This document shows, piece after piece, positions 29,734 to 33,921 of a stretch of 64,000 nt of DNA. Position numbers and translations under genes: made by a program. The stretch is from Blepharisma stoltei ATCC 30299 (lineage: Eukaryota; Protista; Ciliophora). The stretch spans positions 100,444 through 164,443 of the forward strand of contig CBFDEM010000019.1 in assembly GCA_965603825.1 (NCBI GenBank), in the 5' to 3' direction. The notes under the pieces were generated by a model that had not been told where the DNA came from, did no database searches, and saw nothing but the letters and a program-made list of their open reading frames with translations. How positions within the stretch are numbered: position 1 is the first letter of the stretch; the number at the start of each line of letters is the position of its first letter.

Positions 29734-31875
29734 ATGGAATTTAAGTCCGAGTGACTATTAGAAGACCCAATCGAGCTTTTAAGCGAAATCTCTACTGGAT
29801 TGCATAGCACTGATGAAATAGAAAGGTTTTCAACAAAGGAAAACCTGACTGAGGTCGAAAAAGCGCTATTGTTTCTTGAAAATGGCCAAATGAATCAGAA
29901 ATTATGGGTCGTTAGAGCGATACATTTGTACATTGATGACGACAGGTTTCTTGATGTGGTTGGACAACTAGTGGTATTTCTTATGTAGATGAGACTCCCA
30001 TACTGGAATGAGTCTGGTCAAGAAGAAGCTGGGAAAGCATTTATCCAGGTCCTTGAAAAGTACCAGCTCCCACAAGACTACGAAGAACACCTGCTGACCT
30101 TGATCTTTGAAATAATTGACACAGAGACGCTTTCTCTACAAGATATCTGAGTTCAGGTGTTTTGCGAGCTGACCAAACAATTGTCGAAAAACCTGATTTC
30201 TGGGAAATGGCTCAGAGAAATCTTCAATCTTGCCAATTTCAGCAAGCCAGACCACATAAGGTCGATCGCTGGAGAAATGCTGGGGTTTGTCGCAGAAAGG
30301 CTTGAGCACCCTCAAAATGAAGACCTCGTCAGGAAAATTTACTCAATGTCACAAGACCCGATTAATCTAGTAAGAAAGCGGATGTGCGGCGCCATTAAGG
30401 CAATTTCAAAAGCAATCCCATCTGATAAGTTTGAGACTGAGCTTATCCCTCATTTATTAGAATTATTCAGAGACGAAGTCCCAGAGGTGCTTGACGAAGC
30501 CTTAAAGATTTTTTGTGAGCTAATCGATATGGTCTCTTCAAATAGCGCACTAATGAAAATCAATGAAATTCTCAACACCGCCCTGCTTAACTGTGAAAGT
30601 GATAAACTAAAAGAAGTTTATTTAAAATACTATGGAAAAATCATCACAAGCCTACGGTTTCATTTTGACGAAACCACAAGATTAGCCTGCATTGACTGAT
30701 TTGTAGGGTTTTCTGAAACAAAAAGTGAGACAGTGAAAATGGAGGCGGCTTTTAATTTCCCAGCAGTTGTTTTGGTAGCTAGTGGGTTTAATGATAAATT
30801 ATTCAGCTTTTTCAAAATGCTTGCAAAAGAAGAAAATTTTGACATAAAAAAAACCATTGCGAAACAGCTGGCAGACAACGTCAGGTTCTGCACAAGCAGG
30901 ATTGGAGAGTTTTTGGAGATCGTGAGAGGGTACTTAAAAGATGCTTCTACTCAGTATATGGTGATCCCTCAATTATTGAATATTGCACTACATACTTGCT
31001 GCTGCCAAGAATTTCTTGAAGTTTTAAAGCGAAAAATGATGGAGACTCAAAATTGGAGGAATTTGGTCATGATTTTGACAGAAATCAAGGATTTTGTGAC
31101 TCATGCTGACTATTTAGACTATAATTCATTTGTGCCTCTTTTGATTAACTATATGCACAGTGCTCCTTATATAGTCAAGCAAAAATCAGCTGAGCTATTA
31201 GCAGCAATCCTTCACTATAACTACCGAGCTCAGAAGAAAACTGAAATTATTGAGCTCATCATCAATGAATTTTCTTTATCATCAAAATTCTGCGACAGGT
31301 CTCTCTTTATCGACTTTTGTGTCTACATAAAAGACCTATGCTCCCGAAACTTCTTCTGCAAACACTTTTTAGACCAGCTGTTCCAATTAGGAAAAGACCA
31401 TATAAACAACGTAAAATGCAATTTTGCTGCGCACTACACAGAGCTAAGATACTGCATCCATAAAGATGATGCTGAATCTGCAGCAAAATTCAGAAACATC
31501 TTAAACTTTTATATAGAAGACTCTGATAAACTTCTGTCAGAACTCGCTGTCAAAGCTGATGACGCATTGAACAGCAAAAGCTGAGAAGAAGCTTATGGGG
31601 ATGAAGGAGAAACGATCGACCATTTAAGGCAGAAATTTGAAACTGAGCAGGTAGAAAAGGAACAAAAAGAAATCGGCAACTTCAAAAAAGCTATGATGGA
31701 AGAAATCACTGTGAGGAATCGCCAGAATTCACAAGGGTCAAGGAATTTCAGACACTCCACAAGAAGTGGGGCAAAAACACCTGTAAAAAGATACAGTTTA
31801 TCAGACGCTGACAGGTATGAAAGCATGGCGAAAAACGTGCAGAGGAGCTTTATTGCGACAAAAAAACATAAATAA
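29734..31875 (+). CDS. PPP4R4: Protein phosphatase 4 regulatory subunit 4-like HEAT-repeat protein
   Basis: N-terminal EIERF...ENLTEVEKAL.FL..GQ..Q resembles PPP4R4; PP2A-A-type HEAT motifs (QDP..LVRK, AAFNFPAVV, NWR, D.I.NVK). Intron 29974-29988; several TGA=W. Confidence 0.75.
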
Positions 31876-31890
31876 TGTAATTTTTCTTAA

Positions 31891-33921
31891 TTAATGCTGG
31901 AAGACGTTAACGACCATTCCAGATCTAGGCTTGGGCTCGAACCAGGTGGACTTGGGAGGCATGATCTGTCCAGCGTCTGCAATTGCCATAACCTCTTCAA
32001 TCATAACAGGGTACAATGCAATTGCAGCCACACAGTCTTTTTTGGTTCCTGTTTCTTCATGCACTTCTTGAGCTTCTATAGTACTGCCATCAGCCAGTGT
32101 CCATGTCTTCTTGATGATTTCCATCTTTTTGTCACCTTCACAGCCTTTGTGGACTTGACAAGTCAGTTTTAGAGCGTTTTCAGGCCATTCATCATTGATT
32201 ATGATGCTTTCGATCCTTTCGTGGCTTACTTCGACAGCTTCTGTCTGGGCGTTTTCAATGAAATGCTCAGACAAGGTGACATTTGCGATGGTTTTGGTTT
32301 TTGTGTGAGGGGCACAGCCGACACCAATAGTTTTGAAGCGGGGGTTTAGGATAGCTTTTCTATGAGGGCGGCTGCTGAGACCATCATCAGCAAGAAGCAT
32401 GCAGACAACTTCAAAGCCGTCAACAGAGCCATAATCAATAGCTTCAAAAATCGACTCAGACCAATGCCCAAACCTCGCAATCCTGTCAGCAAAACTCATT
32501 TGGTTGCCTTCATTGCGGCCAATTAGTCCTTGTGAGCCACTCTCATTGCAAAAGAACTGGCTTGCTTTGCTCAGGCCATCTGATCACTCCAAAGCATGCA
32601 TATGCTCAGTGCTTTTCAGTTCCAAAATGGCTTCTTTTGCAGCCTCAGTTCCTTCATTTGTAAACAGTGGCTCAGCACCATATCTGCATTTCACTTTATT
32701 TGCTTTATACAAATTCAAAGTGTTTTCCATCCTCTCTGCAAACTTCTGAGGGCTGGTGCGGGCATTATTGATTTCATTGAAAATTTGCTGTCTCATTTCC
32801 TGGTATGTAGGAAGCTTGGTATAGTCGCATCTTCTTTCAAGCTCGTCAAGTCCTCGAATTCCGCCTACAAAATCAATTCTTTCGCTTGTAGTAAGGTCTT
32901 CTATTCCCAAGATTGGGGCAAGGCACAGCTGGGTAAGCAGAAATGAGTCTAAATTGCTGACAGGGTCAGTCCCTATGATTTTTTCTGGCTTGATTCTAAG
33001 CCCTATCCATTTGCCGTTTAGATATAAAGAATAATGGTGTTTGGCAGGAGGTGCTCTTTCAGAGATATCATAAACATCGAAATTTTCCCTTAAAGCAGTT
33101 AAAAATTGCTCAGGTGTTAACCCATTTAAATCCCTGAGGACTCGGTTATAGTCAAAGATCTTCAATTGATTGTGAGGATAATGCAGAGCCATAAAATAAT
33201 TAAAATCTTCATTTCCTGTGATCTCTTGTCCTGCAGCCTTCGCTCTTTCCTGTCTCAGCTTTCCTACATTAAAAGCAGAAGCACTCCTGTGATGTCCATC
33301 CGCTATATATGTGAACGGGATATTTTCAAAGCAGTTCACAAGGACAGCAGACTCTTCACTTGTGCATTTCCAAAGTGTATGTCTAATCCCATCATCTGTA
33401 GTCACATCTGCAAATGCATTTCTCGCTATCACGCTCGACACAACGCTATCAATTTCTTCACTGGCAGGGTAAGTTAAAAAGACTGGACCTACATTTGCCC
33501 CTTGGATATCAGTTAATTTGGTCCTGTCTTCTTCTTTTTTCTTTCTGGTTAATTCATGACGCTTTATGCGGCCATTTTCATAGTCATCGACAGAGGCTCC
33601 AGCTAAAATCCCATACTGGATTCTTCCGTTCATGGTTTGGGCGTAGATGTAGATAAGTTCTTCTGGCTCTTGGATTAGCCAATGGTTTGCAATGAAGGCT
33701 TGCAAATTTTTGTGGCCGGTTTGGTAGACGATGTCAGAGTAGACATCAACATCTTCTGGAAGGTCAATTTCTGGTTTATTGCAATGGAGAAATGAGGCTT
33801 CATTTCCGTGTGCCATGATGCGGGCTTCGTCAGAGTCCAAGACATCGTATGGAGGAGCTATTAGTCTGTGAGCGATTGAAGGATCTACGACGTAGCCTTT
33901 AAATGGTCTAATCTTCACCAT
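31891..33921 (-). CDS. DUF1015 (ParB-like fold) protein with an in-frame inserted CAP/SCP domain, 676 aa
   Basis: DUF1015 motifs: PPYDV, IKRHELTR.KKEEDR, YIADGHHRSASA, YNRV, RIDFVGGIRGL.ELE.R and the terminal IADAG.IMPPKSTWFEPK.RSG. Region 32038-32823 encodes CAP-like EINNAR..P, L.(W)S.GLS.A, RI.RFG.W, DDG..SR.HRK.ILNP.F..IGVG. Confidence 0.88.

Follow-up and report, generated by a model that had tools for sequence, protein, structure and literature searches.

A DUF1015/SerBK enzyme of the ciliate Blepharisma stoltei split in frame by a CAP-domain insert

Introduction

Natural domain insertions illustrate that an autonomously folding domain placed in a surface loop of an enzyme can leave the fold of its host intact. 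The host enzyme described here belongs to the DUF1015 family, a Clostridium member of which complements E. coli serB (GapMind 2026, bioRxiv 10.1101/2024.10.14.618325, PMC13759103). DUF1015 proteins have been proposed to act as serine kinases in both the synthesis and the use of serine and were named SerBK, their chemistry being still a proposal; bacterial members include C. difficile CDIF630erm_01132, C. botulinum CBO1128, and B. thetaiotaomicron BT1151 (PMC13759103). That study is silent on eukaryotes, and we found no description of a eukaryotic SerBK in the searchable literature.

The inserted module belongs to the CAP superfamily, whose domains bind sterols, fatty acids, and cations; one member, SmVAL4, binds sterol without the histidine tetrad (PMC4921858). 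In the macronuclear genome of B. stoltei, UGA encodes tryptophan and introns are 15 to 16 nt long (PMC9942806). Our literature searches returned no paper joining Blepharisma with DUF1015 or CAP proteins and none describing their fusion. Here, we analyze such a fusion in a stretch of 64,000 nucleotides of B. stoltei ATCC 30299 (contig CBFDEM010000019.1, positions 100,444 to 164,443), hereafter the window.

Results

The gene and its transcript

The gene lies on the minus strand of the window, from 33921 to 31891, and encodes a DUF1015/SerBK enzyme split by a CAP insert, in 676 codons followed by TAA. We refer to it as the window copy, or C19, to distinguish it from its paralogs.

31891..33921, minus strand: whole coding sequence, DUF1015/SerBK with CAP insert (= P0121), 676 aa and TAA
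32584..32586, minus strand: TGA read as Trp446, TGG in the B. japonicum transcript; code per PMC9942806
31874..31890, minus strand: 17-nt 3' UTR, the same as the last bases of the B. japonicum transcript ahead of its poly(A) run

The original prediction, made from the sequence of the window, had described a 676-aa frame with one TGA read as tryptophan, and this was borne out. The single in-frame TGA is codon 446, which is TGG in B. japonicum, while codon 81 is TGA in B. japonicum and TGG in B. stoltei; because TGG and TGA are swapped between the two species at both codons, TGA is taken to encode tryptophan. The identical 676-aa protein is already in NCBI/UniRef (P0121), and thus the ORF is annotated. 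The analysis also supported an intronless DUF1015 enzyme and, in line with the predicted cytosolic protein lacking a signal peptide, found neither a signal nor a transit peptide. A convergent HEAT-repeat-like gene on the plus strand ends at 31875 (window 31874-31893), so that the 17-nt 3' UTR slightly overlaps its stop.

A transcript of B. japonicum (MMETSP1395; P0001, L020), which is 96% identical, crosses both junctions of the insert; its last part is an identical 17-nt 3' UTR and, after that, a stretch of A residues that the B. stoltei genome lacks. The chimera is transcribed and polyadenylated in B. japonicum with its insert retained. Since both junctions are found in a polyadenylated transcript, the insert is not spliced out.

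The two species were compared at a dS of 0.25-0.41. Between them, the N-terminal core had a dN/dS of 0.046 and the insert one of 0.090 (95% 0.045-0.161); the C-terminal block, whose amino acids do not differ at all, had 0. For the linker and tail of the insert (aa 557-626), the linker of which is modelled at low confidence, the value was 0.05. At 0.09, the dN/dS of the insert indicates purifying selection.

The B. stoltei genome holds a second DUF1015-CAP fusion of 677 aa (C34:133664-135697; L002:1501-3534). It carries its insert at the same site, with a 4-residue lead and a K-K-D-C exit as in the window copy, to which it is about 76% identical over the core and 46% over the insert. Neither gene has an in-frame ATG upstream of its start. 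A more distant copy of 423 aa (C37; L003:1474-2745) is uninserted and has an Arg-rich N-terminal extension, which possibly resembles a mitochondrial presequence. Because the only uninserted copy is the one with the presequence-like extension, both presumed cytosolic copies (C19 and C34) carry the insert. N-terminal extensions were also seen in the environmental relatives P0004, P0008, P0012, and P0013. We regard it as practically certain that the chimera is a genuine gene and not an artefact.

The host enzyme

Within the host, PF06245 matched aa 4-326 with an E value of 1e-97 and a score of 327 bits, against a gathering cut-off of 25.8 (Pfam).

32827..33921, minus strand: N-terminal portion of the host, aa 1-365: ParB/SerK-like core, then a second domain as far as C365; PF06245 at aa 4-326
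33553..33558, minus strand: H122-E123, conserved family motif; across 146 homologs, H122 never varies and E123 is present in at least 90%
33286..33306, minus strand: IADGHHR motif, aa 206-212, nucleotide-binding motif of the ParB fold
32851..32865, minus strand: GGIRG motif, aa 353-357, followed by helix 357-365, which ends at the insertion site
31894..32043, minus strand: C-terminal host block, aa 627-676, with the PPKSTWFEPK motif; pLDDT 78-92

A split PF06245 flanking PF00188 had been expected. PF00188 was indeed found in the insert, but PF06245 covered only the N-terminal 326 aa; the C-terminal block falls outside the match and was recognized through alignment to full-length homologs. The N-terminal part is 68% identical to the Stentor ortholog. 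When near-invariant columns were defined as those conserved in at least 90% of 146 DUF1015 homologs, 52 of 52 were kept in C19, C34, and B. japonicum, and the family motifs PYD, H122-E123, DGHHR, YNR, GGxxG, and PPKSTWFEPK were retained. The conservation of H122-E123 makes it the probable counterpart of the region around the catalytic Glu30 of SerK, E30 mutants of which appear in PDB titles.

The AlphaFold2 model of the full protein had a mean pLDDT of 86. When it was laid over the model of an uninserted 414-aa DUF1015 protein, 411 of 414 residues superimposed at 1.5 A rmsd, in a span running from residue 1 to 675, and the overlays from two predictors gave TM scores of 0.95-0.98 (0.98 for the Atlas model). 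The low-confidence stretches lie within the insert and its exit linker, with pLDDT <50 at 623-627. Thus, the two enzyme halves are predicted to reassemble into an intact DUF1015 fold around the insert, with the C-terminal block packing back on the core as had been anticipated. The predicted core also matched the SerK and SbnI structures (Z 11.4-13 over 213-226 residues, in ranges reaching residue 676), while searches of PDB sequences with the protein and with a 146-sequence profile yielded chance matches only (E 0.19 and 0.93).

The insert and its junctions

In uninserted eukaryotic orthologs, the loop that follows the GGIRG helix has the sequence C-x-x-D-C. Because they have 2 residues where the window protein has 263, between C365 and D629, the net insert is 261 aa (D366-T626). 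The originally predicted distance of 262 codons to the point at which the host resumes was counted correctly (Y367-K628).

32044..32826, minus strand: net insert, 261 codons, D366-T626, from the junction table and alignment to standalone CAP genes
32254..32811, minus strand: CAP/SCP alpha-beta-alpha domain, aa 371-556, by PF00188 and fold search
32056..32175, minus strand: three-stranded beta-meander tail, aa 583-622, belonging to the donor CAP gene
32823..32826, minus strand: GACT at the left junction, a chance occurrence absent from the C34 paralog
32034..32037, minus strand: GACT at the right junction, the host Asp629 codon plus T

The insert consists of a 4-residue lead and a counterpart to an entire standalone CAP ORF: L370 aligns with the donor M1, and the insert ends at about the end of the C4-type standalone ORF, the donor stop and 3' UTR being missing. 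The predicted CAP/SCP fold was found by two approaches. PF00188 scored 22.1 and 29.4 bits against a gathering score of 21.1, with the window insert (22 bits) just above the cut-off, and a fold search with aa 367-553 retrieved CAP structures, led by 4ifa (Z 15.8, rmsd 3.0 over 128 residues) and followed by 4d53 (Z 13.4) and GAPR-1 and Pry1 (Z 10-11.5). A CAP fold match at Z 11 was also obtained to the Tetrahymena N-DRC models 8tid_P / 8th8_P. A ciliary role by way of this CAP-like chain was considered and found no support, the source paper making no mention of a CAP domain.

Folded alone, the tail of the insert gave no specific fold match (best Z 4.9). Since standalone CAP genes match the insert over its full length, the tail is part of the donor gene. 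Hence, the predicted tail exists, but it is not an element separate from the CAP gene. Multi-CAP proteins are also encoded in the genome: a 634-aa protein on C11 (L011:1057-2961) has two CAP domains and a tail weakly like the beta-meander of the insert (E 0.002, pairwise), and an ORF of more than 1300 aa at C56:157200-160900 (L012, L015) has at least five tandem CAP domains and a centrin-like EF-hand region at its end.

GACT had been pointed out at both junctions. The 4-mer is present at each, but it occurs 12 times in the 2028-nt coding sequence and is missing from C34, and thus its presence reflects chance (an Asp codon plus T) rather than a junction signature. It was rejected as a target-site duplication because the left junction of C34 has no GACT and the restored loop has the wrong length, DNA removal between the two copies leaving a loop 1-2 aa shorter than in orthologs. 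A transposon-type insertion or internal eliminated sequence (IES) was likewise rejected, since excision at GACT fails to restore the host loop and the right junction has no TA. The K-K ahead of the host Asp was considered as a relic of a poly(A) tail and proved uninformative, being present in the uninserted ortholog P0015 as well. In P0375, an unrelated DUF1015 homolog, the same loop holds a low-complexity Ala/Gly/Thr-rich insertion of about 40 aa, and hence the loop is permissive; no folded domain was found in it among the other DUF1015 homologs examined.

Divergence of the insert

Among the standalone relatives, 68 CAP columns are conserved. Twenty of these, clustered at aa 454-477 and including H457 and H469, are gone from the window insert; seven are gone from the C34 insert, which keeps both His.

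32515..32553, minus strand: CAP segment eroded from H457F to H469R; C34 and most standalone genes keep both His

When the Pry1 tetrad is matched by motif resemblance, the window insert lacks H457 and H469 and retains E493 and H520. Its branch is 1.68 long, as compared to 0.65 for the C34 insert and to 0.15 and 0.19 for the cores. A burst of change followed by constraint suggests remodelling toward a new non-catalytic role. The standalone CAP paralog at C14:574901 (L009:1459-2250) shows an independent loss of many conserved columns, the His at position 457 among them.

Evolutionary history

In the host tree, the inserted cores of C19 and C34 are sisters (100/95), and the pair is in turn sister (100/97) to a clade formed by 414-aa proteins of Stentor coeruleus and environmental relatives, all of which lack the insert. 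The inserts themselves fall among the standalone CAP genes of Blepharisma (91/89), supporting the prediction that a native CAP gene lies inside the surface loop. Donor-type standalone genes of 258-267 aa are found on contigs C4, C14 (two), C6, and C20, and their identity is 46-47% to the window insert and 60-63% to the C34 insert. The two inserts form one group in the best tree, with weak support (58/52), and have 8 private residues in common, the most of any pair (next best 7). Because the Stentor orthologs lack the insert, a single insertion in the Blepharisma line with duplication afterwards is the best fit, and we consider it very probable that the insertion took place once after the split from Stentor and that duplication into C19 and C34 came later.

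The host DUF1015 clade (SH 99, FastTree only) includes the foraminiferan Elphidium, the metamonad Barthelona, Stentor, and other ciliate-like sequences. Given this placement in a eukaryotic clade, the host is not a recent bacterial gift. The horizontal acquisition proposed for the enzyme can stand at most as an ancient event, but not as a recent transfer.

Homolog searches found no DUF1015-CAP fusion outside Blepharisma, their sensitivity being limited in that one search missed even C34; the architecture was thus not seen to be widespread. The Stentor loci and the three Blepharisma loci have no neighbors in common except for a kinesin paralog of 35% identity on the opposite side, and no CAP gene adjoins DUF1015 in any of the loci compared. 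As the loci share no synteny, there is no sign of a local rearrangement of neighboring genes. A whole ORF with a short lead would fit insertion either through an mRNA copy with a short UTR or through DNA-level repair, but neither the donor stop nor its 3' UTR is present.

The serine pathway

SerC and SerA-like genes of B. stoltei map as follows.

C53:248996-252352, C57:232402, C36:949564: two tandem SerC genes and two SerA-like genes

Two SerC genes exceeded the cut-off and stand in tandem, while the two SerA-like proteins scored below the curated cut-off (278 of 454 bits). No canonical HAD SerB passed the cut-off in the genome, the best matches to the SerB profile being P-type ATPases; there are 23 histidine-phosphatase matches. 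SerC and SerA-like proteins without a canonical SerB may represent the pattern of SerBK bacteria, with non-canonical phosphoserine phosphatases as a possible alternative. Going by what is known of the family, the core is likely to be still an active SerBK.

Discussion

Our data lead us to lean, if only slightly, toward the single capture of a native CAP gene by an active SerBK, with the CAP module as a non-catalytic appendage. A complete native cytosolic CAP gene, from its start-codon region to its last sense codons and without its stop, would have entered a cytosolic DUF1015/SerBK gene in frame, at the short loop after helix 357-365. This would have happened after the Stentor line had split off and ahead of the duplication into C19 and C34. 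By analogy with its family, the core would act as a nucleotide-dependent serine/phosphoserine phosphotransferase of the ParB/SerK fold, working with SerA and SerC in place of SerB. The CAP module may fold on its own outside catalysis and serve as an appendage for interaction, oligomerization, or localization, which is the weakest step of the proposal. In the window copy, it appears to have been remodelled in a burst, with the loss of both His of the presumed cation site, and then to have been fixed under strong constraint.

It seems to us an even bet that selection maintains the insert for a non-catalytic role that is not ligand sensing. For its role, we favor an appendage for interaction or localization, then a passenger constrained by its fold, and last a ligand sensor. 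As a passenger tolerated through constructive neutral evolution, the CAP module would have no role of its own; its removal would need a precise in-frame deletion, and it would have to fold with its ends close together for the split enzyme to assemble. In favor of a passenger, P0375 shows that the loop tolerates junk, 20 of the 68 conserved CAP columns are gone from the window copy, the branches of both inserts are longer than those of the nearest standalone genes, and Stentor does without the insert. However, dN/dS is 0.09 across the insert and 0.05 at aa 557-626, near that of the enzyme core, and both paralogs have retained the insert at full length despite saturated synonymous sites between them, which leaves this reading rather unlikely. 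A switch, along the lines of the original suggestion that lipid binding might be coupled to the enzyme, would have the CAP module respond to a bound lipid, sterol, or divalent cation and act on the enzyme by way of the two linkers, which adjoin the conserved GGIRG and PPKSTWF motifs. It would suit the ligands of CAP domains (PMC4921858), an insertion site 8 residues past G357, and an exit strand that leads to the PPKSTWF motif. The C34 insert has both His, and the sterol binding of SmVAL4 without the tetrad (PMC4921858) makes their loss compatible with lipid binding. On the other hand, the closest folds are bacterial SCP domains, the exit linker, with pLDDT <50 at 623-627, suggests loose tethering, and H457 and H469 are gone from the window copy; we therefore find such a switch improbable. 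We give only a little more weight to the broader idea that whole-gene capture produced a SerBK controlled by ligand or by site, with a His-intact sensor in C34 and a remodelled anchor in C19; equally doubtful is a link, made by the CAP module, between the one serine/phosphoserine interconversion of the cytosol and either a lipid or cation signal or some structure of the cell.

Two CAP donors could have entered the same loop of two paralogs independently, by recurrent targeting, as the inserts are only 46% identical, that of C34 is closer by identity to the standalone C4 gene (63%), and insert monophyly is weak (58/52). Yet the site is identical to the residue, the lead is 4 residues long in both, and the exit is the same; moreover, the hosts are sisters, the best tree joins the inserts, and 8 private residues unite them (next best 7), so that recurrent insertion is very improbable. 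An assembly chimera, a retained IES, or an intron could appeal only to the 4-nt repeat at the junctions. This explanation is effectively refuted by the independent B. japonicum transcript with both junctions and poly(A), by the second paralog and the purifying selection on the insert, and by a right junction without TA, genome introns of 15-16 nt, and the wrong loop length that excision at GACT would leave.

The single capture of a CAP gene by SerBK offers a datable natural experiment, since the donor family, an uninserted Stentor ortholog, and two diverged inserted paralogs are all extant. In-frame capture of an entire ORF is thereby shown to be possible even where introns measure only 15-16 nt, and the case marks a permissive loop in an enzyme family without a solved structure. 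SerBK, named in 2026 from bacteria alone, now reaches into a broad clade of eukaryotes and may replace SerB in heterotrich ciliates. If the improbable reading of a controlled SerBK were true, a SerA-SerC-SerBK pathway without SerB would, moreover, be described in a eukaryote for the first time.

The insertion of a domain into an enzyme loop is of a known kind and both families are known; the DUF1015-CAP fusion is new and found in one genus. It differs from domain insertions in general in that its donor can be traced to an entire gene, paralogs of which still exist in this genome, and in that exon shuffling offers no easy route in a nearly intronless genome. With the standalone cytosolic CAP proteins of heterotrichs (~255 aa; C4, C14, C6, and C20; Stentor SteCoe_11710), the insert can be aligned over its whole length, beta-meander tail included; in contrast to it, these are free genes that have their own start and stop and mostly keep both His. 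The insert has the alpha-beta-alpha sandwich of the CAP superfamily (4ifa, 4d53, GAPR-1, and Pry1; Z 10-16) but differs from the superfamily in that it is cytosolic, without a signal peptide, has partly lost its His, and is embedded in an enzyme. The host resembles DUF1015/SerBK by its score of 327 bits, ~50% identity to bacterial members, 52/52 columns, and the 411/414 overlay, and it differs from bacterial SerBK in being eukaryotic, lying outside an operon, and having a CAP module of 261 aa in its midst. With SerK (T. kodakarensis TK0378, 5x0b; PMC5120207) and SbnI (5uje, 6nr6), it has in common the ParB-like fold and the DGHHR motif; however, these proteins are ~240 aa long, carry no insert, and are 12-15% identical, with no match at the sequence level. 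The window protein would thus work like SerK and SbnI, of whose family it is not a member.
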